The position numbers and the translations under genes were made by a program. From Octopus bimaculoides (lineage: Eukaryota), in the NCBI RefSeq assembly GCF_001194135.2, contig NC_068984.1, positions 84,424,184-84,488,183 on the forward strand: 64,000 nt of DNA, read 5' to 3'. Shown here piece after piece: positions 953 through 22,044 of the stretch. The notes under the pieces are model-generated. The model was not told the origin of the DNA. It ran no database searches and saw only the letters and a program-made list of their open reading frames with translations. The stretch's first letter is position 1; each line of letters begins with the position of its first letter.

Positions 953-1098
953 CTTTACCTATGTTGGAGTCAGAACTAACAGAAGAAAAGTTTTTAGTTA
1001 ATGCCAAAGTCCAATATTTAAGATTCCTCATTCTATCAGGACACGACAGTTTTGCCTCTGTACACAAAGTAACAATAAATGGCACTTCAGTTCGCTAG
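953..1098 (+). CDS. IFT25: Terminal coding exon of intraflagellar transport protein 25 (IFT25/HSPB11); upstream exons lie before the window
   Basis: Acceptor tatttcAG at 951-952, then xLPMLESELTEEKFLVNAKVQYLRFLILSGHDSFASVHKVTINGTSVR*. This matches the recalled IFT25 C-terminus (human ..ATYLRFIIVSAFDHFASVHSVSAEG). AATAAA at 1218-1223. Confidence 0.85.
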
Positions 1099-1714
1099 CA
1101 CTATAACAGTTCTACATTTTCACATGTTCACATTTTTATTGATCCAAAGACCTTTTATGTCTGTTAAATATATAATTTATAATCAGGATTTACCTTTGGG
1201 CAGTTTGAATGTTATATAATAAAAGAATAATTGTATAATTGGTTGAATGTTTAAATATCTGAGAGGAATTGTAATTTATTGGAACTAAGACAGACTGCTA
1301 TTAAACACTTCTTATTTTGACCAGAAGTCTTAAGTGCTACTTTCTTTTGCTTGTTCACTTGTATTTTTTTAATATTTATCTATCTGTCTGTGTTTGTGTC
1401 TGTGAAGATGCATGCTCTAGTGATTAAGGTGTTGTATTCATGATCATTAGATCACAGGTTTGATTCTTGGACCAGATAGCACATTGTGCAATTGAACAAA
1501 ACACTTCATCTCATGTTACTCTAAGATTATTTCAAGATCTGATGTGTGGTACACTTACGCACCTGCACATGTCATGTTGATTTGATGGAGGGAGTGACAT
1601 ATGCACAAACATTTTATCACTATAAATTGATCATGAGGGTTGGTTGTTCAACATGAAGTTGCAGAACCATCTTCTGTTGTCTGATGACTGGAGCCTCCAT
1701 GACATGTATATCTG

Positions 1715-1820
1715 TACCTACCTACCTGCCTACCAACCTACCTGCCTACCTACCAACCTACCTACCTACCAACCTACCTACCTACCTACTTACCTACCTA
1801 CCTACCTACCCACCTACCTA
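1715..1820. repeat. (CCTA)n/(CCAA) microsatellite
   Basis: Direct reading; it produces the spurious TYLP ORF. Confidence 0.95.
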
Positions 1821-2523
1821 CGTAATGGGCGGACGCTAGTCAAAACGGCTCCACGTAAGTTGTCTATTTTTGTGTGTTTAAAAGTTTCATTGTCAAATAT
1901 TTTGTGTCAAAAAGTTGTCCAACAACATACACTTCCAAACTTGATTAATATTTACATAAGATTTTACCCCTCTGTGAGCAAAATTTCCAAAACTTTGAAG
2001 GTTTTTGTTGATTCATTTTAGCCATTTTTCGTTTTGAATATGGCAACTGGAAACTACGAGGCCAGCATGCAAGTCATGCAGAACGCTAGCGAGGCGCTAA
2101 AAACAACCGAGGAAGATTTTCCTAGCCTCCTGCTACCATTAGTTACTGAACCTGACAGCTTGAACGCCACTGCCACCACCACCAACAACAACAAAACTAA
2201 TGTCGCAAGGCCATCCACCATCACCACCACCAAAGACTTCAAGTCTGCCATCAACACCAACACTACTACTACAACAACTTCTGCTGTTACAACTACCTCC
2301 ACTGCTACCACCACCACCACCAAGGACCAATCAAATTTTGCTGAAGCAATAAAACAAAAAAGAACAATAGTCAAATCCACCGCCCAACAAATAAATGACA
2401 CAAAAGCTCTTCTTAGCAAAGAAGGAGATAATTTACATCACCACATTCCAAAAAACATCTTAGAAAACATGCAAAAAAGAACAATCATTTATAGAATTAT
2501 CAACATGAAAACAAGAAGACCAC
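1821..2523 (+). mobile_element. 5' fragment (5' UTR and ORF1 N-terminus) of a putative L1/Tx1-type LINE
   Basis: Begins right after a (CCTA)n tract. The Thr-rich ORF ends in ILENMQKRTIIYRIINMKTRR, similar by eye to VMKSMEEKTIVYKVYSVKEKN in the CCHC-containing ORF at 18003-19077. Confidence 0.45.
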
Positions 2524-3017
2524 ATTTATGTGGAAATGTTGGACGAGGTGTTACTCTGGGTCATAGAAACCTTTGGTGACCATTATATCTTCACTCAAGA
2601 TGAGGCTCCAACCCACATCCAATTTGACACAGAGGTGGTGCATAGAGCATTTCAGTGGTTTTTGAGACAAGATGGTATGGGCTCCCTCAAGTCCAGACAT
2701 CAATCCCATGGACTCTGCTATCTGGTCCATCTGAGAGAGTAATGTTTCTGTTCATTCTTATTCAAATGTGTCAGATCTGAAGAAAGCCCTTCTGTCTTCA
2801 TGGGTCAAGTTGGTTGAAGAGGTGGCACTGCACTCATGCAACTCAGTGACCACTCATTTGCAGGCTATGAACAAGGTGAAAGGTGGTCATTTTGAAATAT
2901 AATTACTGCAATGACAGTTTACATTAGAATATGTGTGCCAACTTTCATAATCCTACTTAAGTCTATTTTGAATAATTAAGAAATATCAATGGGTAAATCT
3001 TTCTGGGACACCCTGTA
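2524..3017 (+). mobile_element. 3' fragment of a Tc1/mariner-superfamily transposon, maT-like (DD37D), pseudogenised
   Basis: Reads FTQDEAPTH..(frameshift)..WAPSSPDINPMDSAIWSI...KGGHFEI*. About 37 residues separate the two Asp after frameshift repair. TIR-like end ctgggacaccctg followed by TA at 3016-3017. Confidence 0.75.
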
Positions 3018-3044
3018 TATGCATGTATATGTATGTATATACGT

Positions 3045-3430
3045 GTGTGTTCTTTTATTTGTTTCAGTCATTTGACCATGGCCATGCTGGAGCACCGGCT
3101 TTAGCCGAAGAAATCGACCTCAGGTGTTATTCTTTGTAAGCCAAGTACTTATTCTATCAACCTGTTTTGCTGAACTGCTAAGTTACAGGAATGTAAAAAT
3201 ACCAACATCAGTTGTCAAGTGATGGTGTGGTTCAAACACAGACACAGAAACATACATATATGTATATATACAAAGGGCTTTTTTCAGTTTCCATCTACCA
3301 GATCCACTCACAAGACTTTGGTCGGTTCCTGGCTATAGTAGAAGTCACTTGCCCAAGGTGCCACGCAGTTGGACTGAACCCGGAACCATGTGGTTGGGAA
3401 GCAAGCTTCTTACCACACTGCCATGCTTGC
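3045..3430 (-). mobile_element. tRNA-headed SINE, near full length
   Basis: Reverse complement of the 4504-5622 family, with head, CA/TA linker and 3' part. Confidence 0.8.
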
Positions 3431-3659
3431 ACCTACATAAACAGAGCCTCGAGATGAGGCTAGAAGGCTCAATATATTAGAATCATACCATTTTGCAGTG
3501 TGAAGCTTGAAGTCAATAGGCAAAAGAGTGAACTTGCAAATGAGCTAGAGAAATGATTTATGGGTTATCTCTTTATGTAGGGATTCCAGGGTGTATAAAT
3601 AGTAGTAGGATAAAACTAGTACTAAAGTAAAACAGGAATCGCCAATATGTCTAGAAAAC

Positions 3660-4345
3660 AAATAGTATTTATGATTTCGTAAATAGAGCTAATTAATATT
3701 TATCCAAAACCAAACCTGTAGAGTTTTTATAATGGTGTACTTACTGAAATATTCTAGAGACCAAACGTCTGTTGTCCGTAATGGAACTGACCAAAGTCCT
3801 TCCATCTCTACAATTGGACAATTATATTTAAACCAAGGGTAAGTTAAGACCGTTACAAGGGTAGACGTAAATAAAGAAGAAAAATGAACCAGTAAATAAA
3901 AAGGTGTGGGGGAGAAGACTGTCATAAGTGGCACGAGGCCTCTTATGCCCTTCCACACCATCTCAACATAACATAAAATAAACAATAAAAATAAGATGAC
4001 TAGCAAGCAATGCGGCTATCAACTTTTTTACAGTTAAGGGGAGACTACTGATAGTGGGGTGAATACTAGTAGAAATTACCTACGAAATATAATGCCAAAT
4101 CTGCTATCTTAAATAGCCAGCATACTTCCACGTGGTGGTAATACTAGACAAACTAGTAAATGTCTATTTCTGAAAGAGTGTTGGTGTGCAGCTACTCTAC
4201 TTTTCATTTCATTTTGGGTAGCTCCTATGTATATTCTTTTACTAAACTGTGTTGTGACTGTGCACTGGTAAATTACATCCTTACTTTTACAGGTATTTCC
4301 AAGGCACAATTATCCTTGTACTTTTGCCTTCTCGTATGTCTTAAG
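3660..4345 (-). mobile_element. Degenerate Penelope-like element, GIY-YIG endonuclease relic
   Basis: CLGNTCKSKDVIYQCTVTTQFSKRIYIGATQNEMKSRVAAHQHSF shows the IY..YIG and R...H..SF pattern of PLE endonucleases. The downstream part is heavily decayed, so boundaries are approximate. Confidence 0.6.
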
Positions 4346-4503
4346 AGGCAGAATGCACTCAGTAACGTGTAAACATTTACTTGTTTGCGGCTGTGTATCA
4401 CTGAAACTGTGCCAAGAATTGAGTTACTCGTTAGAAAAAGCCAAGCTTATTCATCTCACTAAAACATGTAAGATTAAATTAAGTTAAATTTATTTTTCAC
4501 ATA

Positions 4504-5622
4504 GGCGCAGGAGTGGCTGTGTGGTAAGTAGCTTGCTTACCGAGGCCTCTCCGGTGGGAAGTGTGCCCCCGGAGAGGAAAACTCTGCCAGCGGGAATTGT
4601 GCCGATGACAGAGTAGCGTGACGTCCCTTCCAGTGAGGATAATGATTATGTTATGTACTATGAGGGAGGGGCGGTGAATGAATTCTTGGACCGCGAGTGC
4701 GGCCAAGATAGGAGCTACTCGGAATGTGCGAGTAGTTCCACACGGCCTCCGCAGGTGACTGCGGAAGTTATAAATGACAACATAATGACAAAAGTCATAG
4801 AAAAATATAACCATAAAGATTTCTTCTACCTCGCCGCAAATTCAAGCCTAACAATAGACACTTGTTTGGCAGGGGTAGCATATCTGCTTGCAGAGGGGTG
4901 GAATGAGGAAAATTATGATATTTTTAATTGTTAATATATTGAAATTGTGTAAAAATTGTAATTTTAAAAGGAAAAAAAAAAGAACATTGTTTNNNNNNNN
5001 NNNNNNNNNNNNNNNNNNNNNNNNNNNNNNNNNNNNNNNNNNNNNNNNNNNNNNNNNNNNNNNNNNNNNNNNNNNNNNNNNNNNNNNNNNNNNNNNNNNN
5101 NNNNNNNNNNNNNNNNNNNNNNNNNNNNNNNNNNNNNNNNNNNNNNNNNNNNNNNNNNNNNNNNNNNNNNNNNNNNNNNNNNNNNNNNNNNNNNNNNNNN
5201 NNNNNNNNNNNNNNNNNNNNNNNNNNNNNNNNNNNNNNNNNNNNNNNNNNNNNNNNNNNNNNNNNNNNNNNNNNNNNNNNNNNNNNNTTCTGGGTTCAGT
5301 CCACTGCGTGGCACCTTGGGCAAGTGTCTTCTACTATAGCCTCGGGCCGACCAAAGCCTTGTGAGTGGATTTGGTAGACGGAAACTGAAAGAAGCCCGTC
5401 GTATATATGTATATGTGTGTGTGTGTGTGTTTGTCCCCCAACATCGCTTGACAACCGATGCTGGTGTGTTTACGTCCCCGTAAGTTAGCTGTTCGGCAAA
5501 AAAGAGACCGATAGAATAAGTACTAGGCTTACAAAGAATAAGTCCTGGGGTCGATTTCTTCGATTAAAAAGGCGGTGCTCCAGCTTGGCCACAGTCAAAT
5601 GACTGAAACAAGTAAAAGAGTA
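4504..5622 (+). mobile_element. tRNA-headed SINE, interrupted at 4541
   Basis: A-box-like tggctgtgtgg and B-box-like gggttcagtcc. Body and 3' end (gactgaaacaagtaaaaga) are shared with copies at 3045-3430 and 52627-52870. Confidence 0.8.
4542..4992 (+). mobile_element. ORF-bearing insertion inside a tRNA-derived SINE head; putative LINE ORF1-like 5' fragment
   Basis: The SINE consensus breaks at gcttgcttacc (4541) and resumes after the gap at 5288. The insert is GC-richer than its flanks, has a 93-aa ORF and ends in an A-rich tract. Confidence 0.4.
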
Positions 5623-7257
5623 TAAACATATGGCTCGAAATTTTGCGGGAGGGAACAGCTAGTTATATCGAATCCTAGTCTTTGAACTGGTGCTTTATTT
5701 CATCGATCTCAGAAGGAAGAAGAGCAAAGTTAGCCACGATAGGGTTTGAATTCTTTATATTAAATCAATAAAAATAGAATCTATTCTCTGCTCTATGGTA
5801 TGCTTTACACTGTATTCTTCACACCTAATACACCAATATTACCAGATATGACAAAGTAAAGGTATGAGAATTCCTGGGTAGTTTCGTTAACAAGAAATAT
5901 ATATACAATACAAATCATTAAATACGAAGCAGAAGAAAGGAAAAAGATTTTGCCTGTTTTCGCAACATAACTCAGTATCAAATTTTCATGTCAGTTTCAG
6001 GGTATTTAAAGCTATTAAAAATATGTATAAATCCAAAATTAGTAAAATTATCTCCCAGATAAGCGAAATTTACCCTGGAGGTAAATTTTCCCTCAGTTTG
6101 GTATTGTATTGTGCTAACAGAACTGCTTCATTACTGACTTTCATTACAATACTTCAATAAGAACCATTTAACGACTACAGCTAAAATATGATAAAGACTT
6201 TTGGGCCGTTTCTCCCTCTACATTGCATGTATGCACATACACAACAGACATGGTATACAAACTATATGGCAAGTTCTGGAGAAAAAAGAGAACACCGATT
6301 GCTTCGACATAAAGAATGGTTGGTATTACGTATCATCAATTCAAATGACGTCAGATTAGAAATTCGTAGTTCGCAATTGAACGATTTCTTTTCTGTTAAT
6401 TCCTGTTTGCATCGCCTTAGCTCTTTTCTTTTGTCTGAGGTTTCAGGTAAGTTGACGAGTTATACTCATTGCTTTGTTCTTCTAATCGCAGTTATTTTCT
6501 GTGTTGTGTTTAATCTGACTGACATTGTCCGTTGAAACATAGAGGTCTGTATCTTCAATAGATTTCGAGAACCGCTTTCCAAGGGTTATTGGTCAGTACC
6601 GATCGCCGATTAAGCAGACCTATAATTAAAAACAGTTCGGCTGTAACTATCTTGTCTTATATTTTTCAATCAGATTATCTAGCATCACTCATTATCCAAA
6701 GTATCCTTTCTTTAATATGCTAAGGTGTGATTTAAAGGAGATTTGATTGCCATTTCTAGAAAGCCACACGACCGAATAAATGCACTTACATTCATCTCTG
6801 ATAGATTGATGTTGGACTATTCGTTTAGTCCACTGCTCATATTCCATCATCGGCACTTTGTCTATGCAGTAGCGTAACTAGGAGGGGCAAGGGGACGGTC
6901 CACTCTGAGCGATGTTTTTATGGGGTCGGCGTTTTTGGGTCTGTTGCATAAGCCTGTATAAAAGGGGTACGGCAAACTCAAGTTATTCTACTGTGTCTAT
7001 GACCTAGATTTCTAACACTTGTAAATTGGTAACAAGTGGCAGTACAGCTAACCATTTTAAGTTGCTGGAACATTGTGTAAATGGCAAGTGTTTGTGCAAT
7101 GCTAAGACAAGATTCCTCCTATGGTTGTGCCTTAAATATAGAGGTGCTCTAGTAAGCAGACTTGGCTTAGTTTAATGACAATCTTACCAGTTATTGTTCT
7201 TTGATAAGTACTGACGTTCAATATTTAGTGTACGCTGTACTTCTATCCAGTCTCTAC

Positions 7258-7295
<38 letters not shown>

Positions 7296-8061
7296 CCGGA
7301 GTAAGCACATAAATGTGAAACAAGGTGGAAAAAAAGAGTACTCAAATACCAGAGGTAGAGTAGTATGCTTTATTTAAAAGCAGCAGAAATATCACAAAAA
7401 CTGTTACTCAGAGTTTCACGTTCCCGTTCGTTGGACAGTTTTGATAGAATGGAACAGAAATGACGATATAATCAAACAAAAACAGGAAAAAAAACTACTT
7501 TAAAAGATACACCTTTGAAAATGGTTTTGTTTCATTGGTCCTTTCAACTAATGGTCTTAAGCATGCAATGAACAAAATAGATTCAGTATAAATTCATCCT
7601 ATTGTAAAATCGAAGAAAACCTTAAATCGAAGGACAGATTCCTAATACATATGGTAAATAATCATATACGAAATATAAGTCAATTAATACATTAAAATTA
7701 AAGTTAAAAATTTTCACGCTGTATTACATAAATATTTTTTCAGCAGTATATACGCATACTAGACCATCTATAATATACATATATGTACACCAAAGTACAC
7801 TGATACATGTTCATAGTTATATACATATTGAGACACATATATAAGACATAAATATATACACAAATACACACATATATATATATACACGCACGCGCACAAA
7901 ACCTCTTAGTGTATACATATACAGGACGGTTATTACAGACGGGAGAAATAGGAAGTATACCTTAAGCGTAGGGAGGTGGGGGAGAAAAAGAAAAAGAAAC
8001 AGAGACGTAAAAACTAGCGAGCGAAAGAGAAGAGAAAAAAGAAGTTTGTTAAAAGAAGTTA

Positions 8062-8099
<38 letters not shown>

Positions 8100-10194
8100 G
8101 ATTTGACTCAGGTTCAGTCTTATTCCTGGCAGGATTTTTGTGGGTAGCGGGTTACTACCTGTAACCTTAAGTATCCACTAGCTTTCAATAGTCTTTCAAG
8201 TACTTAAAACCCTCCTGATAATCTTTCCTGTCCCTAAGAGGCAAATCTTCTGTAGAAGCCCTACAGGACATTCTATTCCAATCTCCTTCAACCATTTGTC
8301 TATACCTTTGCTTATTGTTCCCAATACACCAATTATTATAGGTACAACCTTTACAGTTTTCATATTCCACATTCTTGCAATTCCAAATTTTAAGGGATTG
8401 TATTTTTTTGTTTTTCATCTTCTTTCTTTACGAGCCTGGAATCAAACGGACATAATGGATAAATTAATAAGCAACTTCGCTTTTCCTTGTCTATTATTAT
8501 TGTGTCTGGTCTATTATTTTCTAGCTTCTTGTCCGTTTGAATAGGAAAGTCCCACAAAATCTTACAATTCTCCGACTCCAGCACTCTTTCGGCCCCGATG
8601 TTCACACCGTGTATCTCTCACTTCAGATCCCTATTTCTGGCATAGTTTCCAGTGTAAAACGTTTACAGATTGGCCATGTCTCCATTTCTTATATTCTTCC
8701 TGTGCCAACTTGGGACATTCTGCAACAATGTGTACCACTGCCTCCTTTCAAATTTCGCAGACTCTAGTTTTTTGACACATTCTCCCCATATTAATTTTTC
8801 CTCAAGTTTTTTTTTATCGTTTGATCCTGGGCTGCTACAGTCAGGTTCTCTATTTCCTTTTTTAATTGCCCTTTTTTTTTTATCCAAGCCCTGGATTTTG
8901 TTCCACATACATCTTCAGTGGCTCTCTAAAATTGACAACGCAGAAGTTTCTCTTCTATCTGTTTAACGTGCGCTCTTTGAATTCCATTCTTGTCCTTTTC
9001 TCCTATTCTACACTTCATCATTTGCTCCTCATTCACCTTCTTTAGTAGTTTCTATGTGCTGTTCTGTAAATATTCTAGCGAGCTTTTTCTTTCCATCTAT
9101 ACACACTCTTCCACAGCAATTAAGCCTCTTCCACTCTGATCTCTCTTCAAGTGCAATCGGTTGATATCAGCTTTCGGATGGTGGGCACCATTTATTGTCA
9201 ACAACTTTCTAGTTTTTCTCTCAAGTTTCTGTATATCATTTGTAGTCCAGTTTACAATTCCAACTCTATATCTGATTAGGGTAGACTGGGTAAAGAGCCC
9301 ACCTGGGGTAAAAGGCCTACCCTGCTTTGCATGGAGATGCATCAATACCCACATTTTCTGTTACAATACTTCCTGCCTTGATCAAATTATTTGTTTCTGT
9401 GATGTTGTTTTTCTGATGTATTTCAGAATTTCATTGACATTTTCCGTTTCTTGGTTGAATTTCTACCGGTCAACCTTTTTAAGGTTGCAAATAATGTCGC
9501 TATCGTTCTCCTGTAGTCTTGCCTTTATTCTGTCGTAGGTTGCCTTTTGTCCATCTGTCACGTCGCCATTAGTTTTATTGTCTTCTTTTAGATCATCTAT
9601 TTGTCTCTCGTCAAGCAAACTACCACTGTTCCTTTCCTGTGTTATGAGATTACTATTATTAGTAAGAATTGTACTTTCATCGTTATCTCTGCCTGCTATT
9701 TTCCAAGACCCGTCATTTGATGGCTTCGAGCTCTACTTCTGTGAACCAACGATATTTTTCTTATTGCTCTAGCTTGATCACATAGTTTCTGTTCCATGGG
9801 TTGAAACAATCCCTTTTCCCTCCAATGATCATACATACGTTGTCGGTAACCCCTAATTTGAGCACCATTTTACATCTACCGGGTTGCTCAGGTTGTAACA
9901 CTCCATGACCACAGCATTAACTTGCTTGCTCCATCTACGCCACGTGTGGTTGTCCCTTTTTGGATATCGACAGGCTGGAGCCAGACCAGAATTTCTGAGC
10001 CTGCCGGGTGCAACACTGTCACCATTAATGGCTTCAGTTTCATTACCACCGTTATTCGCAATATTTTGTCTATTTATTGTCACTCCTATGAGGTAGCGAT
10101 TATCAGGTTGCGCAATTACCAGTGTTTTTATTGTAACACCATCACTAGATGTATCATTAATCAGGACATGGGGAGACACCACCCGCTTCCTTTC
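8100..10194 (-). mobile_element. Dong/R4-clade non-LTR retrotransposon (RLE endonuclease), internally deleted (no RT core), in a (TAA)n tract
   Basis: N-terminal WSKQVNAVVMECYNLSNP; post-RT IRYRVGIVNWT..RKTRKLLTINGAHHPKADINRLHLKRDQSGRGL; RLE motif KILWDFPIQTDKKLENNRPDTIIIDKEKRSCLLI. TAA repeats lie on both flanks (8065-8099 and 10195-10210). Confidence 0.85.
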
Positions 10195-10647
10195 ATTATT
10201 ATTATTATTATCATCATCACTGATATCACTGATATTATTACTTTTACTTTTTTACTATTTGTCATTGTTAAATTAACAGACTCAGGGGTTATACAGGCCT
10301 GTGCAGGGCAGGGGTGGCACCAATTTCCAGCACTCTTCACGTGGACAGCCGCATAGAAAATTACACACTATTTTATCTAGCCTTTCTCAGCGATGTTCTG
10401 TCATGCAGAACAACTTTCCAGAGAGTCCATTGCTCACTTGTAATCTTCTTCGGTGAACAGGCTCTTCTTCAGTCTTCTATCGCTGTTGTCAATTACTGCC
10501 TTTATTGTTGTATCTATGTGTAATAGCAGCAGTGGTGGCAGCAATAGAAACAGTAGTAGGGGTGGGGTTAGTGGTAGTAGTGGTAGTTAAGCCTCAGATT
10601 CCAGTGCAATCAGAATAGTAGTAGTTGTAGTATTAGCAGCTGCAGCA

Positions 10648-10701
<54 letters not shown>

Positions 10702-10760
10702 CATCATCATCATCATTATCACCATCACCACCACTACTACTGTTATTATCATTATTACCA
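10648..10760. repeat. (TTA)n/(TCA)n compound microsatellite
   Basis: Direct reading. Confidence 0.9.
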
Positions 10761-10879
10761 TTTCCAATTATTATTAAAAGATTTTATTAAATGTTCTTTA
10801 TTTTCAACTTTTGTCTTGTACTTGAGATAATCATAAATATGTGGTTGTTGAAGGAAATAGTTGGGGGAAGAGTAGCAGC

Positions 10880-11335
10880 TTGGTGAATAGATCAAATTCT
10901 ACAGGTCTATAAATAGATTCGGCAGATCGTGAGGAGATCAGCCATAGCGACAAAAGAATCTTCGCACCCTTTGGGTCAGCAGAGGTCAAAGAAGACTTTC
11001 ACCGGTGTGACATGAAAACTGATAAAACCAGGAACTTCCAAGGCCTCAGGTTTTATTTCGGAGATTTCCTTCTCTTGGGTAGATTACCAACCAAGGTTAA
11101 AGAGCTTCTACCTGCCCATGAGGTAAGCTATCCCATTCCAGACAGATCACTCTTGAGTGCTACTGGTAACATGTAATCCAGTACAACCTGTCGCATGGTT
11201 GGATCGTTTGCGACGAAACTAACCCCAGCAGGCTTGCTTGGGTGAAGAGGGTGTTGTTGGACACCCTGCAGGGTGAAAAATAAGACCCGTCAAAGGGCGG
11301 AGGAACTCATGAGCAGTCAACAGCCATCCAACAAA
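10880..11335 (+). mobile_element. Probable 5' UTR fragment of an RTE-clade LINE
   Basis: ccttctcttgggtagattaccaaccaaggttaaagagcttc..., followed by acccgtcaaagggcggaggaa, resembles recalled RTE 5' UTR motifs. No ORF follows. Confidence 0.4.
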
Positions 11336-11629
11336 ATATCTATAAATATGTATAGATCTTTTTTCTTTTTCCTTTTTTCTTATAGTTATACATATGTATA
11401 TTTTTACTTTTATATATATATTATTTATATTTAAATCTTACTTTATTTATATTTTTACTTATACTTTTTTTATATTTATATATATCATTTATATCTAATT
11501 CTTACTTATATTTGCAAATTACATATCGTACTTTTCTTTTTTTATGTATGAATGAGCTACTTCGCGTCGGTCACTGGAGTGATATTTGATCCCTTTATAG
11601 AGTGTTTGAGTGTCGGTTTGGTGCCTGGA

Positions 11630-11660
<31 letters not shown>

Positions 11661-11664
11661 TATA

Positions 11665-13356
11665 CAGACATGCAACAAGTAAATAGACACCTTTAATTTT
11701 CAAAATCTTTTATTTAATACGCAGAGCGAACAATTGAAATGTAATCGATAGGTAGGACTACATTCTTTAGTATTTAGTTGACATTCCCTTTGCAGTTTTT
11801 AATTCAGAAACTCTTTTTGGCATTGAACCTATGAGCTTTGTGATTGTCTCTTGTGGAATTTCTGCCCACTTTTCACGCAACAATCGAAACAGTTTGTAGT
11901 AACGCCGTGCGCATGCGTAGTCTCACGCATGCGTGGAATTAAACAAGCAAGCTTTCNNNNNNNNNNNNNNNNNNNNNNNNNNNNNNNNNNNNNNNNNNNN
12001 NNNNNNNNNNNNNNNNNNNNNNNNNNNNNNNNNNNNNNNNNNNNNNNNNNNNNNNNNNNNNNNNNNNNNNNNNNNNNNNNNNNNNNNNNNNNNNNNNNNN
12101 NNNNNNNNNNNNNNNNNNNNNNNNNNNNNNNNNNNNNNNNNNNNNNNNNNNNNNNNNNNNNNNNCTAAAGATGTATATATTTACCACCTAAATAAATGTT
12201 GTTTAAGTTGATAGTCCGGAGTTCAGCGTTCCGTTATATTCTTTAATTTTATATAGGAAAGTCAGGTATACATCTAATGATGTGTAACCAACTTTCCTAT
12301 AAGTTCATTTTTAGATTTAGGTTTCTGTCGAGTTTTTCGTATAGCTCTATCTAGTATGCTCCAAAGATTTTCAATTGGGTTCATGTCAGGATATTGGTTC
12401 GGCCAAGGAAGTTTTTTGATCCGATTTTCAGACAGCCATTGTTGATTTCTTTTCGCTGTGTGGCATGGAGCTCCATCTTCCATGAATAAAATCTTATTTT
12501 TCGTTATGTTATCGTGTGAATTCATCGGAAGTAGTCCTTGCTTAAGTATTTCAATTTATTTTTCAGAGTTTATAGTTCCAACACATTCTATCAGCTCAGA
12601 ACGACCATTGCTGGTGACAGCTCTCCATACCATTACAGAGATACCGCCATGTTTCACAATTGGTTGGAGTCGTTTCAAATCAAATCTATCAATTTCTTGA
12701 TTGGGAAGCCTCCAGACCCAAACACGTCCACTGTCTGAAAATAATGCAAATCTGGATTCATCTGAGAAAATCACTTTATCCCAAAATGAACTGGATTTTT
12801 CTGATATTTCCTTAGCCCATTTCTTTCTTTTCATGATATTCATTGGTTGAAGGAGAGGTTTTCTTCTAACTGCTCGTTCATAATACCCAAGCTTATACAG
12901 ATATGTAACACACGTTCTTGGACTAACTTCTAGCTGTTTTGCAATGTCAGAAGCCTTCAAACGGGTTCGTTTTCCACAATTTTCTTCAATCATTGAAGCT
13001 TCCTTTCCGAGGGCCCAGGTCGACCGGGACGAGAATTTGTTGATTCTTTTCCTTGGGTCTTGAATTGCCTTATAATTCTATTAACAGTAGCAATAGGAAT
13101 TTGAAGATTTTTGGCAATTTTTCGCTGGCTAAGATCAGCCTCAGATTGCCCAACAATACGACCTCTTTGAAAATCTGACAGTTCTGCTGAATTTTTTATA
13201 CGTGGCATGGTTACTCTTTGCAAATGTTTAATATAATGACACCTGGAATGAAAATGAATAATTACATTTTAAATTCTACACCGCTGAAAACATATTAAGA
13301 CTCTTAGATCAGAAATTTTGAAAATTAAAGGTGTCTATTTACTTCCTGCATGTCTG
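11665..13356 (-). mobile_element. Tc1-family DNA transposon (DD34E) with both TIRs; transposase pseudogene
   Basis: 42-bp TIRs at 11665-11706 and 13315-13356 with 2 mismatches, in a TA context. HTH ([11 protein letters not shown]), SDESRF, MEDGAPCH-x-NPIENLW with 34 residues between D and E, and C-terminal SMPKRVSELKTAKGMSTKY*. Frameshift near 12995, stop at 12556, insertion at 11895-12301. Confidence 0.93.
11895..12301. mobile_element. Insertion nested in the Tc1 transposase with a 4-bp target-site duplication
   Basis: AGTT at 11891-11894 and 12302-12305. Removing the insert and one TSD copy restores KPKSKNEL|FRLLREKWAEIP. Ends are TGTAG...CTATA; contains the N gap. Confidence 0.7.
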
Positions 13357-13537
13357 TGTATATATCGTCTGTAAAACATAAAACCGAAAGAAGAAGCGCA
13401 CTCTAAGATATAGAGCAATACATATTACAAATGGGGAAGACTGATTTATGGGATTACCTTAGGTTTCCCGTCCATAAAGGATTTAGCTTTATGGCGTGTC
13501 GTCAGACCCCAAAACCTGTTGAACCAAGACCTCTTAG

Positions 13538-13574
<37 letters not shown>

Positions 13575-13858
13575 TGTGGGTGGGTGGATGTGTGTGTCCG
13601 TGTGTTCACGTCAGACTGTTTTTGTTTGTTGGTTTGTGTATGTGCAATTTTTTGTTTGCATGCGTACTTTTAACGCAGTTTTCTCCTTTTTATCAGATTT
13701 GACAACTAAGACTTCGACTATACTTGAAAAGGTTTCGTTTCTTCGCCGATGATCTACGACTTTCCAGAGCTACTTTTAAATTACTAATCCATCTTACTGT
13801 ATAAATATTTGTCTATCTATCTGTCTGTCTGTCTATTACTTTCTGATTTTCTGGTCCC

Positions 13859-14235
13859 ATGGATGATACAGCATTTTTCACTTTCGAACCAAAACCTCTA
13901 CAGACAATATGTATCGAATTTTTGGTGGGGAACCTGGACACATACCAGTCTTTACATACATTACCTGTCACAGTAGCTCAAGAAATATTTATTGCTGCCG
14001 ACCATAATAACCAATTTTCGATTCCTTCAACAACGGTCTTCAAGAGATTGGAATTATTTTCGTCGACTTTCACCAAGTATTTTGTCTCAAGCCTTTCTTT
14101 GCGCCATTCAAGTCATCTGATTAATTATTTGTCCAGTGAATTCACAGTATTTTCCGGAGTTAGTTCCCTCGATTTGAGTCACTGCAAGCTTGGAGATCGC
14201 CATTCAATCTTGTCCCAGTTGAATTATTTTACTAA
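13859..14235 (+). CDS. LRRC42: LRRC42 coding exon 1
   Basis: ATG at 13859. MDDTAFFTFEPKPLQTICIEFL...LDLSHCKLGDRHSILSQL resembles human LRRC42 (..LDLSCCKLGDEHELLEHL). Donor aa|GTGAGT, phase 2. Confidence 0.9.
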
Positions 14236-14785
14236 GTGAGTATGTTACTCTGGGCATTATATGTCTTCGATTATTAAACAATAAAAGCACGTGTTTAGGC
14301 TCCCAAGGCGGGGTGGGGGAGTCACCTCAGAGTCTTTTTTTTTCCTAGTGCCAGATTTATCAAGGTCAAAAAGTAAAATTATAGTAGTTTTATTTAAAAA
14401 AAAAAAAAATTTTTTATTGTTGAATATTCGCATTTTTCCTATATAATATATCGTATTGATGACATATAAGACACAAAAAACGTCTCAAAAAACCACCCTG
14501 CATCCTATATGCGAAGTTGCTTTAAATACTACATGCTTTGATGCACAAAACCATTTTTTCCTTAAAATTGCTGCTGAAATTGGAATGCGATTAACATCCG
14601 GCTTGTATACCATCAAGTACGGTAAGTAAATATTCTTATGGGTATGTAAAGAAAAGCGAGAATCAAACGACTTCTCCGTATGAATGATGGACGTAAATAC
14701 CAGTCACTACAAGTAATGTCAGTGGACTAACAGACACCGGAGTTTCGATTTGATTTTGCCTCCTCAATGGTAGACATTACCCAGT

Positions 14786-15005
14786 GGAGACGCGTGGCTT
14801 AGTGGTTAGGATGTTGAACTCATGATCGTAAGATTGTAGTTTCGATTCCTGAACCGGGCAACGCGTTGTGTTCTTGAGCAAATCACTTTATTTCACATTA
14901 CTCCAGCTGGCAAAAATGAGTAATCCTGTGACGGACCAGTGTCCTATCCAGGTGAGGAATATATACGCCATGGGAACCGGCCATTACGAATCGGTATGAC
15001 TCGAG
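14786..15005 (+). mobile_element. Second tRNA-headed SINE family (also at about 462-680 and 1405-1660)
   Basis: ggagacgcgtggcttagtggttagg (A box), gtttcgattcc (B box), then gcgttgtgttcttgagcaa..cactttatttcac, which recurs at 462 and 1405. Confidence 0.7.
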
Positions 15006-16545
15006 AAGGAAACTGAACTTTGTTTTGAATATTACCCGGTCCTTTGGAGCCAAGCGAAACACGTGTTTCTATCAACGGAAATCAGTAAGCAAAACATTTG
15101 TTGGTGCGAGCAAAGACTTACCTAACTGAAACAAACAGTACCATTCTTAATACATTCTTCACACTCGAACTTGAACATGGCTTTTTGCTGTTGGATAGAT
15201 AAGTATCCATTTCCTTCTATTTTTTACTGCTCTTTAGTTAGGACTGATATAGTTAGCACTGATGAAGTAGACCTATGATCAAAGATGCTCCACCTAAGGC
15301 AATTCCACCTTTTCTTTATATTTTTTGATAATGTATATCAAGAACATTATCCAATATATTCCCATTCTTTTTTTAATTGCACACTCTGTGGCATGAAGAT
15401 TTGATGACTATTTCTAATAAATAAGGATCATCTGGCGACAATCACCTGTGAATGTTCTTAAATCTGACATATTCTATTCTTTTCCAAGGTGGTAAAATAT
15501 GATTTTAGGGAGATTTGGTTGCTGTTTGTAACAGACTAAACTGATCTAGTTTTTTTTTTTTCATTCGCAAAATATGCAGTAAAAAATCTGAAAATCGGCT
15601 ATAATAATATAGTTTTCCAGTCTAATTGCTATGAAGGTATGATGTTGTGGAGAAAGTAATTGGAGGAAAAAGTTACAGATTTTTTAAAATATAAAAAAAA
15701 CTGTATTTTTAACCAATAGCGAGAGAGAAATTTTCTGTGTTTAGCGGAGCAGTGTCAACTTTAAAGTTGTACCCTGTGAAATAATACCTGTATCTTATAT
15801 TCACCTTCATAATGCCAAGAAACTGTATAAACATCGCAAACAACTTTTGCTATATATGAAAAATATGTAAAATATTAAGATGATTGACGAAAAATATCTA
15901 TAATAAAATTCTGATTGATAAATATAAATTTTTATTAAAACAAAACACGAGGGTGAAGTAAATCTCGTGGTGCGAAGAATCAACACAACATGCAGATGAA
16001 ACACAACACAATGTGCGGTTGTCATGGTAACACGTTGTTAATGCCTCGCTATCTGTTGATTGGCTAAAATTACCTAAATTTCCCAACTTTACTTCCAAAT
16101 AACATCAGATTCTTTAATTCACGAGATAACATAATTGGTTGGTCATAGTCAAAATTCAGAGTTGCATCGATACACCAAAATTGAAAGCAATTTGAGCAAA
16201 ATAAAAGGGGGTTCATTTTGTGAATGAAAAATACGAGATCCGACTAAACGCCCATATAGAAGTTTCCACGTAGGCGTATGACAGAGCGATGAATTGGCAG
16301 AAATTATAGATCAGTTTATAAAAAGCCTTACAGCATTTAGTTACGGTCGTCTGCTTCTTGAGTTGAGTACTAGTGTAGATTTAATCTCCAGCTTTCTCTC
16401 CCAAACATCAATGAAACTGATCCCCCTTTGATGAAAACCTTTGATCACTGAATTGGTGGCTAGATAAATTAATAGTAATAATTTATGTTGCATTTGTTTT
16501 TGTCTTTTGACATATTAACTTTTAACATATAGTGTTGTATTACAG

Positions 16546-16664
16546 CTTGACATTGCTTGCTCTTCGTGATAATGGGCTGAGCCATCGAGGTATTGATCAC
16601 ATGACGATTTCTTTACGCCTTCTTAGAGGCGGGCAAAGAAATTTACAATATCTTGATATTTCAG
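16546..16664 (+). CDS. LRRC42: LRRC42 coding exon 2
   Basis: tattacAG acceptor and cag|GTAGGT donor; 119 nt, phase 2 to 1. NLTLLALRDNGLSHRGIDHMTISLRLLRGGQRNLQYLDIS corresponds to human VTQLHLKDNCLSDAGVRKMTAPVRVMKRGLENLTLLDLS. Confidence 0.9.
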
Positions 16665-17508
16665 GTAGGTATTTCTTTCGTTATAATCAAATCAACACAT
16701 TTTGTTTTTAATTATTTGTAGGGTGGAGCATTGACAGAGACTGAAGAGCACGAAATGCAACGCTCTGTGTTATTAAGTTACGAACTTTTAAGCTATGATT
16801 TCAAACCCTGTCAAGATCAACTTTGCTTTCATTATTCATGGGTCGATAAAATAAAGTATCAGTCAAGTGTTGGGAGTTGATATTTTTACAATGCACTAGC
16901 TGTAGTATTTTGTCTACTGGGAGGCAGGCTATCTCATTAACCCAGAATAGTGGTAGAAGCCTCTGATGAGAAACAACGTCATATTGGTCAAATTTTGAAA
17001 TCACGTGATAAGGTTTTGTCCAAATACTTCATTCTGTGAGTTTATCTCACCAGGGAAAGATGTTTTGGCTTGCTCACTCGCAATTCCTGTATATCTCATT
17101 GAGGTTAGTGCTTTATGTGGCTGTTTGAGTTAAATTTTGACTCATTTCTAGCAATTGCCAGTGCTATTTTACACCTTCGTTTATTAATTTTACCTTTTTG
17201 GTTTTAATTGCTAATGTGCCACCTATATTATAATGTATTTAATACATCTTACTATATTAATTTATTATTATATCTTATTGTATTATATATATATATCATA
17301 TCATATCATATCAGTCTATGGATGATTAAATTATAACAATTATTATAGTGCATTGTTGTGCCATTCAAGACACATTATTTTTTTTACAAACAATACACAA
17401 TGCTTCAAGCGAACTACAATACTCTCATATATATATATATATATATATATAAGGGTGGCATTTATAAAGCTCTATCACTTTATCTAAGTTTCAATCTTTA
17501 TTTCACAG

Positions 17509-17597
17509 ACAATCAAGATTTAGATGCCAGTTGTTTAGAATACTTAAAGGTGTTTCCAGAGCTCAAATACTTAGATATATCAAATACAGCAATATCT
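17509..17597 (+). CDS. LRRC42: LRRC42 coding exon 3
   Basis: tttcacAG acceptor and tct|GTAAGT donor; 89 nt, phase 1 to 0. DNQDLDASCLEYLKVFPELKYLDISNTAIS is an LRR unit corresponding to human NPEITDAGIGYLFSFRKLNCLDISGTGL. Confidence 0.9.
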
Positions 17598-18076
17598 GTA
17601 AGTCTTTCTTGTATCTACTTTAGTGTGTGTGTGTGTGTGTGTGTGTATGCCTGCGTGCGTGTGTATTTGAGAGAGAGTGAGAGCCAGTGAAAGAGAAAGA
17701 GACAGATAGACAAAGGAAGAAAGGATGTATGCATGTGTGTATGTCTGGTTACATTTGTTTTACACTATCCGACACTTCTTTTATGTTACAGTTCACTTTC
17801 CTATATTTTAAACCTTCCTTGTATACTTCTATTTCTCTTATACGACACTCAGGCACCAACACGCATGTGTCTGTGTTTGCCTTTTCTTCCATGTTTACGA
17901 ACTTTGTATAGTGTGATGTCACAAAAACAGTAGAAACCACAGCAATACAGTATTCTTTAGATATAGTGCCATAATGTATCAAGGACTGCATTATCCAATA
18001 TATTACTGCTTTTTTAAAGCAAATGAAATTTTAAAATTAGACTGAGGTTTGTGACAAGTTAAGCAACTACTTTTTG

Positions 18077-19210
18077 TACTTTCTTGTGTCTGCTTCTTTT
18101 TTTCTTTTCTTTTGTGTCGGCGGGGTGGGTTTGGTGTCTGTGGGGGGAGGGGGAGTTGAGAAGGTATGGGTGGGATAGGTGCGGGGTTCACTCTGACTTT
18201 CTTTCTCTTCCTCTGCTTTCTTTCTTCTGCCACCTTCCATGGTTCTTCTTCGTTCACTTCTGTTACTGTTACTTCTACCTTTTCCAGTTCCTTTCCGGCT
18301 TCCTCTTGGTTTTCCTTATTATTTTTTAAAGGGCAGTCCGCTCTAATATGGCCCTTTTGGCCACATATAAAGCAACGAGGGATTTTGACCTCTACCCAAA
18401 CTCTAAGCACCGCTTCTCCTATTGTTACTGTTTCCGCCATTTTTTCTAAGTACTCTGCTGTACTCTGCATTATAATGTCCAACACCTTTCCTTTCCAATT
18501 AGGGGCCTCTGTCTCTGTGGCTTGGAGCACAGTCACTTCCTTTTCGCTTCCTTGAAGCACACCAACGCCACCCAAGCCACATCTTCTTCCAAGGTACATG
18601 GGTTGGAGGATCACCCTTTCTGTTCTTAAAGGGTTCTCTGAATGTTCCTTTGCCTTTCTCATGCTTTTGAAATGATCTTCTACAGTACCATATCGGCTTC
18701 CTCTGGCAAGATATGTTATATCCTGCCAGATTGGCCTCAATGCCTTTTCTATTGTTTCAGTTGATTTGTTCTCTATATTCTTCTCTTTCACTGAGTAAAC
18801 TTTGTATACTATCGTTTTTTCCTCCATACTTTTCATTACTTCCTGAGGTGGTGACGACTTCACATCACCACCTTCCCTGTTTATCATTTTTTTCGAAGTT
18901 CCTTAAATTGGTTACATTCACCTCTCTTCTTGAGACCTCTGTCGTCTCTGCAAAACTCCTCTTCCTCAGATACTTATCCACCACGTCGACCACTCACACA
19001 AAATCCTCCTCAGAAGACGACAATTCAGTCCCACTAAGGTCTGAATAGAACGTATTCCTTGTTGAAAACCTAGCCATCTCTCTTCAAATGTGGAGAGAAA
19101 TCAGACAAACAAATCACTGCAAAGCAGCACAAAACAATCATCTATTCTTTAACTAATACAAATCGACAATGTAACAAGTGTAACCAATTGAATCTAGACA
19201 GACACTGAGA
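18077..19210 (-). mobile_element. LINE (L1/Tx1-like) 5' UTR and ORF1 with CCHC zinc knuckle, 3'-truncated, antisense in LRRC42 intron 3
   Basis: ATG at 19077 (MARFSTRN..., one stop and one frameshift) continues into ORF 18887-18003 with CFICGQKGHIRADC and a Lys/Pro-rich tail. No endonuclease or RT follows. Confidence 0.7.
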
Positions 19211-20189
19211 ACGTCACTTTATATGAGGGATGAACCGGAAGTCCCTGACTTCCACGTCAACCGGGAGCTTCTAGAATGTCTGAGAACTTTCTAGAAGGCC
19301 GAGGGGGATTACTCTTGTTAAATCCCTTTTCCGTTTTGCTTTCTTGCTTGATCGCTAGGGTTCACTACATAGTCACTGGTATTACATTACTTTCTGTAAC
19401 TGTCACAATATACTTTTCTAAGACTGAAATTTTTGTGGGGAGGGGCCCAGTCGATTAGATCGATGCCAGTACACAACTGGTTCTTAATTCATCGAGCCCC
19501 AAAGGACGAAAGGCAAAGTTGACCTCGGCAGAATTTGAACTCAGAACGTAAAGATAGACAATCATAATATACAAAGATCTCTCATGGCACCAGTACACTG
19601 TTTACAAACGCTTACAATTTTAATATTTTCCATGAATTTTTCACAGGTCCAGCTAGTATGTATGATCCTTCCATACTTGCTTCCTTCACGTGCAATGGAA
19701 AATATCTAAGACATACTTGTTATTAAGTCAAGTAAGCACAAAATAAACAAAAACCTTAAAACAAGTGTTTTTATTAAATGAAATCTATCCAGAAAATGTG
19801 TGTGAATGATTACGTTGCATGCATGTTTCTGTTTGTGTAACTGTTACACTGGTGATGATGTTTTAGATTAACATAACCTTCAGTTTTCATCTGCTTACAA
19901 TCTCATTTTGATATTCATATCTAAATTTATGGCAGTTGGATGTAGAATTATTGTAGTGCTATATCTCTGATGGTCTACTGCTGGAGAAGATGGCAATAAT
20001 AATGCTGGATTGTAATGGTGGCAATGGGTTTTGATGTGAAGAAATAGCAGCCAAATCTCTCATGTTACACGTTCCCATCTTTAAATAAAAATGGCCACAT
20101 TGAAGAATGTAGTTTCTGATATACAACAACAGCAATAATGTCGTATTGAACTAATATATTTCATTATTATTTCCCCGCTTACTTTGCAG

Positions 20190-20379
20190 AATAAAGATGC
20201 TGCTTTGAGAAAATTTCCTTTAAAGATATTTCTGTCATCAACAAAAGTGGATTATGAAGATATAAAAGAGGATGTGTTTCGGATTGAAACCCTAGGTTGG
20301 GCAAGTCATGTCTTCAATTCTTGGTCAAAATGGTACAAAAATAAAACCAAACGATCTAAACATAGACAATATGCTCCCT
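20190..20379 (+). CDS. LRRC42: LRRC42 coding exon 4
   Basis: tactttgcAG acceptor and t|GTAAGT donor; 190 nt, phase 0 to 1. Contains IETLGWASHVFNSW, similar to human CKTEGWADQIVLQW. Confidence 0.85.
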
Positions 20380-21393
20380 GTAAGTCATTTGCATCATCCT
20401 ACATTTTTATAGTTTAACTGTTTTAATGATACATGGTTCCATCCTAATGCATGGTATCTTGCATGATATCTTGTGCATGTGTCTTTTTATCATAGCCTGG
20501 AACTGATCAAATTCTTGTGAGTGAAATTGAGTAGATTGAAACTGTATGAACAGCATCTGTTCTTAGGTAGAGAGAGCTTTAAAACTTACCTGTCACCAGG
20601 TTTCCCACCACCACCAGCCTTTGAACACCTTCAGCAGAGTTCATTCTATTGAAATCATTTGATCAAGGACTCCAGTTTGGGAATAACTCATTGTTTTGAT
20701 ATGCTACCTCCCACAACAGCTAAACATTAGCTGTGGTTTTCATTGTTCTTTTTTACACTGGTATCAGAGACCCTGCAAAAGTCATGAGCAATGCCTTTTG
20801 TCTCTGACAAAATCATAAAAAAAATTTGAGGTCCCACCTTCTCAGGTATAATTGATTACCTTAACCCCAATAGTTATTTTTAACAGGTTGTACAAATTTT
20901 ATTGACATTTTGAAGGGTAAAAGGCAAAGTGAATCTGAGTGGGGTTTGAATTTTAAATGGGAAGGGACATAAACCATGTTGTACAGGTTATTTCCTTGCC
21001 TACTATTGGTGGCAAGCACTCTTCTAAATATTGAATATCTTACATGGGGCCTACTATATTTGCGTTAGTTTCTTGTGGAGATATGTGGTACAAAGATATC
21101 CCTAAAATTGTATAAGATTCACATGCCTAAGATAATGCCTTCAAGATATTTATTCACTTGCAATAAATGAGAGCAACTGAAGGCTAAATAGGAGAGGAGT
21201 GTAAAAGGAATTTTAAAAAATGGAAGAAAAACAGATTGAGGAACAAAAAGAGAAGGTATGTAAAATATAAGAGCACCCTGCTCCATGAGATAACATGAAG
21301 TTCATTGTCTTGCAAGTGAGCAATATGTTTCTGTGATCTAAGTTGGGTTTTACACAGTAGTTGAAGATGATGTTGGTGTATTGTGTGGAGAGG

Positions 21394-21486
21394 AAAATTT
21401 AGGGTTGATTTGCAAGCTACATGCAAAATTTAGGGTTTATTTACAAGCTACATGAAAAATTTAGGGTTGATTTACAAGCTACATGC
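21394..21486. repeat. 31-bp minisatellite, 3 copies, each containing TTAGGG
   Basis: Unit aaaatttagggttgatttacaagctacatgc with 1-2 differences per copy. Confidence 0.9.
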
Positions 21487-22044
21487 TAAAATAAGACGTG
21501 TGAAAACCACATCAATGATGTATCAGTAGGACTGAACCTGGAACTACATGATTGTAAAGCAAACTTTTTAACCAAGCAATCAGATCAATTATTGATTTCA
21601 AACTCTGGCACAAAGCCAGCAATTTTGGAGGAGGGGGTATTACTTCATCCCCCACCCCCACCCCATCCCAGTGCTTAACTGGTACTTATTTTTATCAACT
21701 CTGAAAGGATGAAAGGTAAAGTCGACCTCAACAGATTTTGAACTCAAAACATAAAGATGGATGAAATGCTGTTAAGCATTTGGCCAGGCATGTTAATGAT
21801 TCTGCCAGATCACTGCCAACCAAAACAATAATTAACCACTGTAATTATTCATTATTGCATTTGTTTGTAGTGCACAATTCATAATTTTAGTGGTATAATA
21901 ACAAATAAAGAATGAGAATAAAACTCTCATTAGTTTTATTAGTATTAATTTAAACCCTCAGAGTTTTGCTTTTTCTTAATTTTCATTTACCCCTTTAGCA
22001 TTTAAACTGGCCATATCCAGTCCAAATATTCTACATCATCATCA

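Follow-up and report, generated by a model that had tools for sequence, protein, structure and literature searches.

How a gene that faces away from IFT25 in other animals comes to stand behind it, on the same strand, is the question raised by a locus of Octopus bimaculoides. IFT25 and LRRC42 form one of the better ancient divergent gene pairs, and their linkage has served as an argument for a ciliary role of the poorly characterised LRRC42; the human genes (HSPB11 and LRRC42, at 1p32.3) are such a pair. The window considered here, a stretch of 64,000 nucleotides, is part of the chromosome-scale contig C4, and the features found in it are collected in Table 1.

Table 1. Features of the window, with positions counted from its first nucleotide.
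Feature	Position	Strand	Remarks
IFT25/HSPB11, fourth and last coding exon (residues 92-139)	953-1098	+	acceptor tttcag just before 953; stop TAG 1096-1098; AATAAA 1218-1223
Assembly gap 1, 295 N	4993-5287		within an O. bimaculoides-only repeat insertion of 1118 bp (4504-5621)
Tc1/mariner-type transposon, decayed, three broken ORFs	11656-13268	-	HTH_SB, HTH_Tnp_Tc3_2, DDE_3
Assembly gap 2, 208 N	11957-12164		inside the Tc1/mariner-type copy, nested insertion
LRRC42b exon 1, with ATG	13859-14235	+	identical to P0013
LRRC42b exon 2	16546-16664	+	P0013 mapping
LRRC42b exon 3	17509-17597	+	P0013 mapping
Retroelement gag-like ORF, 299 aa	18003-18902	-	CCHC zinc knuckle; inside LRRC42b intron 3
LRRC42b exon 4	20190-20379	+	P0013 mapping; 20379 is the gene end given in the preliminary description
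LRRC42b exon 5	23144-23214	+	stop TAA 23212-23214, then AATAAA 23218-23223
ZRANB2, exons found so far	42205-49851	-	RS-rich tail 42205-42624; acidic exon 43742-44068; zinc-finger exons 46763-46861, 48712-48807, ~49819-49851

That the last exon of IFT25 is followed by an LRRC42-type gene, both on the plus strand, had been noticed in the preliminary description and is borne out by exact mapping of the corresponding NCBI proteins. The 48 residues encoded by the IFT25 exon belong to the O. bimaculoides IFT25 homolog (P0005, 139 aa), the remaining three coding exons of which lie upstream on the same strand (C4:84412360, 84419747 and 84422591). The only solved structures matched by the exon are those of IFT25 (human HSPB11, 1tvg, E 4.5e-6; Chlamydomonas IFT25, 2yc2, E 1.2e-4, and 8ruy), and the whole protein matches PF00754 (F5/8 type C, galactose-binding-like) above cut-off, at E 8e-8, its single-domain size of ~140 aa fitting IFT25. 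A human IFT25 query, which agrees closely with the gibbon protein P0008, found three collinear exons on C4 and no other genomic match at E < 1, and the named homologues of the octopus protein are all IFT25; the gene is single copy and a reciprocal best match.

The downstream gene, here LRRC42b, is a complete five-exon LRRC42-type gene (13859-23214, plus strand; "LRRC42-like"). The NCBI protein P0013 (281 aa) maps exactly onto its exons and every border is GT/AG; the gene as first described was real, but its last exon had been missed. Membership of the LRRC42 family is indicated by a match to LRR_6 (E 3.6e-6), by the presence of the family layout (a conserved N-terminal helical region, LRR_6-type repeats and a GW-containing C-terminal motif) and by 22 invariant columns in an alignment (A1) of octopod, bivalve and fish LRRC42 with three further sequences. 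Among the 20 hit clusters checked (of 93 hits) there were 16 named homologues, all LRRC42 or LRRC42-like with the exception of that from Aplysia ('uncharacterized'). The O. vulgaris model of this gene (P0003) is a transposon chimera.

The order of genes on C4 is LRRC42a (minus strand, 84.3996-84.4069 Mb), IFT25 (plus, 84.4124-84.4253 Mb), LRRC42b (plus, 84.4380-84.4474 Mb) and ZRANB2 (minus, ~84.466-84.474 Mb). LRRC42a encodes 289 aa and lies outside the window, upstream of IFT25, in all three of the Octopus genomes compared (O. bimaculoides, O. sinensis and O. vulgaris), and a bowfin LRRC42 query found exactly two loci in the 2.34-Gb O. bimaculoides genome, the two that flank IFT25 (63.4 and 61.4 bits). 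An opposite-strand layout with the 5' ends facing is absent for IFT25 and LRRC42b, which share a strand, and present for LRRC42a and IFT25. IFT25 and LRRC42 are also head-to-head in gibbon (L014), amphioxus and mussel, which indicates that the linkage is ancient, as had been proposed. The ancestral head-to-head unit is intact in Octopus, because LRRC42a stands in that orientation to IFT25 just upstream of the window; octopus thus resembles vertebrates in having a divergent pair, and differs in that the tandem pair of the window makes use of an extra paralogue. The distance from LRRC42a exon 1 to the IFT25 ATG is 5.4 kb in O. bimaculoides; in both O. sinensis and O. vulgaris it is 6.4 kb. In mussel the two ATGs are 2.2 kb apart, and in amphioxus they are separated by 444 bp, all of these being coding coordinates and not transcription starts. 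Since the octopus spacing is of this size and known from coding coordinates only, a promoter shared by LRRC42a and IFT25 is unproven.

Compared from end to end, the two octopus copies share 41% identity, and they form one clade (SH-aLRT 99) that is sister to bivalves, with branch lengths of 1.17 for LRRC42b and 0.47 for LRRC42a. Constraining LRRC42a to group with bivalves cost 26.5 lnL (p-AU 0.033), in a tree that was obtained by a quick search and has long branches, and for a group chosen after the tree had been seen; the cephalopods compared were the three Octopus species and Argonauta. The family assignment is confirmed, but one-to-one orthology with human LRRC42 fails, as there are two octopus co-orthologues in one octopod clade, and the copy in the window, the faster-evolving of the two, is on these comparisons an extra, lineage-specific in-paralogue. 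Both octopod copies are of a short form and, in contrast to vertebrate LRRC42, lack the N-terminal extension (~80 aa) as well as the C-terminal tail with its final DLLNSY; an LL-x-Y C-terminal end is kept in other invertebrate LRRC42.

A further clue to the history of the locus is provided by ZRANB2, which is tail-to-tail with LRRC42b and the next identified gene downstream of it. The preliminary description had drawn ZRANB2 in on the grounds that it shares a human chromosome arm with the other two genes, an argument that is too coarse; the real signal is closer, in the convergent arrangement of an LRRC42 gene and ZRANB2 in both mussel and octopus. In Mytilus trossulus (L017) IFT25, LRRC42 and a ZRANB2-like gene lie within 13 kb, the last of these being the next identified gene downstream of LRRC42, tail-to-tail with it as in the window, and assigned by its Pfam match (Zn_ribbon_RanBP) and RS-rich tail only. 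The difference is that mussel has one LRRC42 and octopus two, each with one of the two ancestral neighbours. ZRANB2 is single copy in the O. bimaculoides genome. A palindromic segmental duplication was also considered and rejected, as it predicts a second ZRANB2 and the genome search found none. In O. sinensis a minus-strand model of 324 aa ends at the position matching 32.26 kb of the window, and it may be either a gene between LRRC42b and ZRANB2 or an isoform of ZRANB2.

Taken together, the findings indicate that LRRC42b is very probably a functional paralogue, the product of a local LRRC42 duplication that took place in cephalopods before the lineages of Octopus and Argonauta parted, and that its same-strand adjacency to IFT25 is a by-product of that event and not a remodelled bidirectional pair. 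The simplest route would start from the state seen in mussel, with IFT25 (minus) head-to-head with LRRC42 (plus) and followed by ZRANB2 (minus). LRRC42 would then have duplicated in tandem, after which the whole unit of IFT25 and LRRC42a would have inverted, so that the divergent pair stayed whole and LRRC42b was left beside ZRANB2. The same end state would be reached by another order of events, in which LRRC42b sits at the ancestral site, retaining its mussel-like neighbour ZRANB2, IFT25 alone was inverted, and an inverted LRRC42a was later inserted upstream to re-create the divergent pair secondarily. However, the chance re-creation of an ancient divergent layout is less economical, and the shorter branch of LRRC42a fits a copy that kept the ancestral regulation, and this order is considered improbable. 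A duplication in the cephalopod lineage might have split the ancestral neighbours of LRRC42, LRRC42a keeping the divergent IFT25 and LRRC42b the convergent ZRANB2, and IFT25-LRRC42-ZRANB2 would then be a block at least as old as the ancestor shared by bivalves and cephalopods; the chances of this being right or wrong appear evenly balanced. If it is right, LRRC42b amounts to a natural experiment in which an LRRC42 gene has been uncoupled from the promoter of IFT25. With one octopus paralogue coupled to IFT25 and the other not, expression could be used to test whether the divergent layout drives co-expression with a ciliary gene.

It might be supposed that LRRC42b is a functionless duplicate in decay, given that its branch is longer than that of LRRC42a and that the O. 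vulgaris model is chimeric. This is very unlikely, as the five exons make up an unbroken ORF in O. bimaculoides and O. sinensis and likewise in Argonauta, the splice sites are canonical, and comparison of O. bimaculoides with O. sinensis gave a dN/dS of 0.08 (22 synonymous and 7 non-synonymous differences), which indicates that purifying selection acts on the gene.

The model of the preliminary description was that of a single LRRC42 inverted relative to IFT25, the bidirectional promoter being broken and the linkage held by cis-regulatory constraint. It fits the window alone, in which IFT25 and LRRC42b are tandem, but because three Octopus genomes carry, just beyond the window, a second LRRC42 head-to-head with IFT25, this model has very little left to recommend it. 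The LRRC42/IFT25 unit is left unbroken in octopus, and there is therefore no evidence here for loss of a shared promoter with the linkage kept. Nor is a constraint on the tandem pair indicated, since in Argonauta hians IFT25 and LRRC42b are 1.3 Mb apart and the adjacency is accordingly not tightly constrained. LRRC42a was not found within 10 kb upstream of Argonauta IFT25, and the divergent pair may have been broken or lost in that genus. Comparison of non-coding sequence around both genes between Octopus and Argonauta produced matches to repeats and low-complexity sequence only. A scan for RFX X-boxes in three consensus forms found none upstream of LRRC42b and none in the intergenic regions between IFT25 and LRRC42 of the three Octopus species, mussel, amphioxus and gibbon. 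The sole match, GTAACCGTAGGCAAC, is in Argonauta, 414 bp before the ATG of IFT25, with 0.14 matches expected by chance in 10 kb. A shared X-box is thus unsupported.

The interval between the last exon of IFT25 and the start of LRRC42b is 12.76 kb in O. bimaculoides and 10.6 kb in O. sinensis (record coordinates compared), and no gene has been called in it in O. sinensis or O. vulgaris. It had been described as holding only transposon debris, and a frame-broken Tc1/mariner copy and SINE-like repeats were indeed found, together with two runs of N inside repeat insertions, both clear of exons. The flanks of the first gap (4401-4503 and 5622-5669) map to adjoining positions of the O. sinensis assembly, which has no N. 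Both flanks of the second come from one Tc1-like copy, and elsewhere in the genome more than 40 copies of this transposon have the base matching 11893 joined directly to that matching 12304, so this gap falls in a nested insertion. Chance re-adjacency or a scaffolding error, which the preliminary description had raised and which the two gaps, flanked by repeats present in thousands of copies, might invite, is extremely improbable, as the adjacency is present in all three independently assembled Octopus genomes, ~52 kb around the two genes are collinear with O. sinensis, the gene order in O. vulgaris is identical and each gap has flanks that belong together.

The conservation of IFT25 and LRRC42 in octopus has already been published. 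A bilaterian 'ciliogenic' cluster, glis1/3-rfx3-ndc1-hspb11-lrrc42, has been described, with its genes within 100-600 kb, and octopus is stated to retain it intact; between human, amphioxus, octopus and brachiopod, conservation is reported not to extend to neighbours beyond these five genes (Yasuoka et al., Mol Biol Evol 2020, PMC6984359). The main text of that paper mentions neither two octopus lrrc42 copies nor ZRANB2, and the reading by duplication plus inversion and the ZRANB2 link in molluscs are small additions to the published cluster; apart from the pair of paralogues, the present result is ordinary comparative annotation. Of genes like its other members, NDC1 is at 84.09 Mb of C4 and an RFX gene, assigned at family level from its best DNA-binding match, is at 83.93 Mb, 0.3 and 0.5 Mb respectively upstream of LRRC42a and IFT25.

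The window occupies G000:C4:84424184-84488183 (+) of the 2.34-Gb Octopus bimaculoides assembly and opens with the last coding exon of IFT25 (HSPB11), an AATAAA lying 120 bases past the stop codon. When the 48 residues of this exon were compared with all solved structures only IFT25 entries were recovered, including human HSPB11 (1tvg, E 4.5e-6) and Chlamydomonas IFT25 (2yc2 and 8ruy), and P0005, annotated as the O. bimaculoides IFT25 homologue (139 aa, PF00754), has the same sequence at residues 92-139. A human IFT25 probe, later found to agree with the gibbon protein P0008, mapped to C4 as three collinear plus-strand exons, with no other convincing match in the whole octopus genome. A run of 1,200 N (G000:C4:84422984-84424183) sits in the last IFT25 intron immediately before the window start, where it may be a true gap or withheld sequence, and two other long N runs occur at window 41475-42053 and about 60290-60750.

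The next gene, LRRC42b, is defined by mismatch-free mapping of the NCBI protein P0013 (281 aa, named "LRRC42" or "LRRC42-like") onto five exons, with GT/AG at every intron border and a TAA stop directly followed by AATAAA. The preliminary description had recognised the gene, but ended it at 20379, the end of exon 4, and missed the fifth exon. LRRC42b is not decaying: O. bimaculoides and O. sinensis differ by 22 synonymous and 7 non-synonymous changes, a dN/dS of 0.08.

Features of the O. bimaculoides locus and gene arrangement in other animals
Feature	Position	Strand	Remarks
RFX DNA-binding exon, best match	G000:C4:83927324-83927509	-	0.5 Mb upstream
NDC1 exon	G000:C4:84091836-84091967	-	0.3 Mb upstream
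LRRC42a	G000:C4:84399566-84406913; exon 1 84406521-84406913	-	289-aa paralogue; loci L009, L025
IFT25, four coding exon starts	C4:84412360, 84419747, 84422591, 84425136	+	genome mapping
IFT25, last coding exon	window 953-1098	+	tttcag acceptor just before, TAG at end
Gap 1	window 4993-5287		inside 1118-bp insertion found only in O. bimaculoides (vs O. sinensis)
Tc1/mariner-type element	window 11656-13268	-	HTH_SB, HTH_Tnp_Tc3_2, DDE_3
Gap 2	window 11957-12164		both flanks parts of one Tc1-like copy
LRRC42b exons	window 13859-14235, 16546-16664, 17509-17597, 20190-20379, 23144-23214	+	P0013 mapping
gag-like ORF, 299 aa, open	window 18003-18902	-	CCHC zinc knuckle; in LRRC42b intron 3, antisense to gene
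ZRANB2	window 42205-49851	-	RS-rich tail, acidic exon, RanBP2-type zinc-finger exons
Gibbon (L014)		LRRC42 -, IFT25 +	head-to-head; LRRC42 428 aa
Amphioxus (L018)		IFT25 -, LRRC42-like +	head-to-head, start codons 444 bp apart
Mytilus trossulus (L017)		IFT25 -, LRRC42-like +	head-to-head, 2.2 kb apart
Argonauta hians	IFT25 near 10.17 Mb, LRRC42b near 11.50 Mb, same contig	both -	1.3 Mb apart

The two genes are separated by 12.76 kb containing SINE-like repeats, two N runs that leave the exons untouched and a broken Tc1/mariner copy split over three frames. More than 2,400 first-look candidates for this element were found genome-wide, and many copies are 93 - 96% identical over a 238-bp end, which suggests that the family has been active fairly recently. 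Loci L012 and L007 of O. sinensis (N-free and identical over their 9,364-bp overlap) were joined as a reference, and its comparison with 84 kb of O. bimaculoides gave 21 collinear plus-strand blocks of 87 - 93% identity, beginning 20 kb before the window and ending at window position 32,658. The flanks of the insertion holding gap 1 (window 4401-4503, 99%, and 5622-5669, 98%) match adjoining O. sinensis bases. Gap 2 falls in a nested insertion, because in more than 40 other Tc1-like copies the base matching window 11893 is joined directly to that matching 12304; further out, its flanks at 9345 and 13303 show collinearity with O. sinensis, and the two species differ in the 3 - 4 kb that these flanks enclose. 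The plus strand of O. sinensis CM016862.1 carries both the end of IFT25, at 106,321,767, and the start of an LRRC42-like gene, at 106,332,404, and O. vulgaris has an LRRC42-like model beginning 8 kb past IFT25 on the same strand, with no annotated gene in the interval in either species. A scaffolding artefact is thus ruled out by both species and by the gap flanks, and the adjacency, with the same-strand order and intervening transposon debris originally reported, is real.

LRRC42b exon 1, scanned with HMMER against 1.84 billion representative proteins, yielded 93 matches. Of 20 hit clusters examined, 16 bore names, which were all LRRC42 or LRRC42-like save that from Aplysia (uncharacterized), the clusters spanning fish, amphibians, lungfish, amphioxus, sea urchin, Ciona, bivalves, gastropods, Nematostella and Trichoplax. 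The second-ranked match, a 289-aa "LRRC42" also from Octopus and here designated LRRC42a (O. sinensis P0014, O. bimaculoides P0106 and O. vulgaris P0107), could not be seen in the preliminary description because it lies outside the window, 17 - 25 kb upstream of its start. Bowfin LRRC42 matched only the LRRC42a and LRRC42b loci in the whole octopus genome (63.4 and 61.4 bits). LRRC42a and IFT25 face away from each other, their start codons 5.4 kb apart in O. bimaculoides, and in O. sinensis and O. vulgaris the strand opposite IFT25 carries LRRC42a at an upstream distance of 6.4 kb. The proposal that a local inversion had broken a divergent pair therefore fails in all three Octopus species, in which LRRC42a and IFT25 may share a promoter.

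Full-length identity between the two copies is 41%; they share a C-terminal motif Y/F-Q-L-[VI]-L-x-K and, in alignment, neither has the N-terminal extension or the long C-terminal tail of vertebrates. Maximum-likelihood analysis of 30 family members placed the octopod a and b groups in a single clade (SH-aLRT 99) beside bivalves, with stems of 0.47 and 1.17 substitutions per site for a and b; forcing LRRC42a with bivalves to the exclusion of b was 26.5 log-likelihood units worse (p-AU 0.033, for a group chosen after the tree was seen). Within the cephalopods compared, all Octopoda (O. bimaculoides, O. sinensis, O. vulgaris and Argonauta hians), the duplication predates the Octopus-Argonauta split, because A. 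hians has a clear LRRC42b orthologue (P0002, 82% exon 1 identity).

Elsewhere the arrangement was head-to-head in gibbon, amphioxus and mussel; LRRC42 was not found within 10 kb of IFT25 in the sponge Dysidea (L015) or in Priapulus (L016), nor IFT25 within 10 kb of LRRC42 in Trichoplax (L019). Gibbon was the primate examined in place of human, in which HSPB11 and LRRC42 are head-to-head neighbours on chromosome 1p32 and ZRANB2 is on the same arm (1p31). ZRANB2, single copy in the O. bimaculoides genome, is tail-to-tail with LRRC42b, and the same convergent adjacency occurs in M. trossulus, where a minus-strand Zn_ribbon_RanBP gene 8.5 kb beyond the LRRC42-like gene has an RS-rich tail and is ZRANB2-like. 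In A. hians a glycosyltransferase, not ZRANB2, lies downstream of LRRC42b, and the 10 kb upstream of IFT25 yielded no LRRC42a. That species has an RFX X-box-like motif (GTAACCGTAGGCAAC, L011:9587) 414 bp before the start codon of IFT25, for which the three Octopus species showed no counterpart.

The most likely history, as judged from gene order and the tree, begins with an ancestral mollusc in which IFT25 (-) would have been head-to-head with LRRC42 (+), itself tail-to-tail with ZRANB2 (-). If LRRC42 was duplicated in tandem and a unit of IFT25 plus LRRC42a was then inverted, the result would be exactly the Octopus order LRRC42a (-), IFT25 (+), LRRC42b (+), ZRANB2 (-), with the divergent pair kept whole and LRRC42b beside ZRANB2. 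Alternatively, IFT25 alone may have been inverted and a new inverted LRRC42 copy then inserted upstream, which yields an identical end state. Under either order the same-strand adjacency of IFT25 and LRRC42b is a by-product of local duplication, and the cis-regulatory constraint once proposed for it finds no favour in A. hians, where the 1.3-Mb separation argues against tight constraint.

The linkage of IFT25 and LRRC42 in octopus was already known, since a bilaterian cluster of glis1/3, rfx3, ndc1, hspb11 and lrrc42 within 100 - 600 kb was described by Yasuoka et al. (Mol Biol Evol 2020, PMC6984359), who report it as intact in octopus. The NDC1 and RFX positions on chromosome-scale C4 are consistent with that cluster. 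The main text of that paper mentions neither two octopus lrrc42 genes nor ZRANB2, and none of the papers searched names LRRC42 together with ZRANB2. The small additions are thus the second LRRC42 gene, the divergent pair found to be intact and the ZRANB2 neighbour in molluscs.

Several gene models deserve comment. A 324-aa minus-strand O. sinensis model has no recorded Pfam match, and its last coding exon (L007:29466-29877) aligns with window 32258-32658 (-), the two being 94% identical; this may represent either an alternative 3' exon of ZRANB2 or another gene situated between ZRANB2 and LRRC42b. The O. vulgaris LRRC42b model P0003 (312 aa; L013:31746-33735) is a chimera that misses exon 1 and consists of a transposon-derived N-terminus, LRRC42b exons 2-4 and then intron read-through. 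In the Mytilus-like model P0019 (241 aa) LRRC42 exon 1 is fused to IFT25 exons 2-4, which is impossible from a head-to-head pair unless the source segment was inverted or misassembled.
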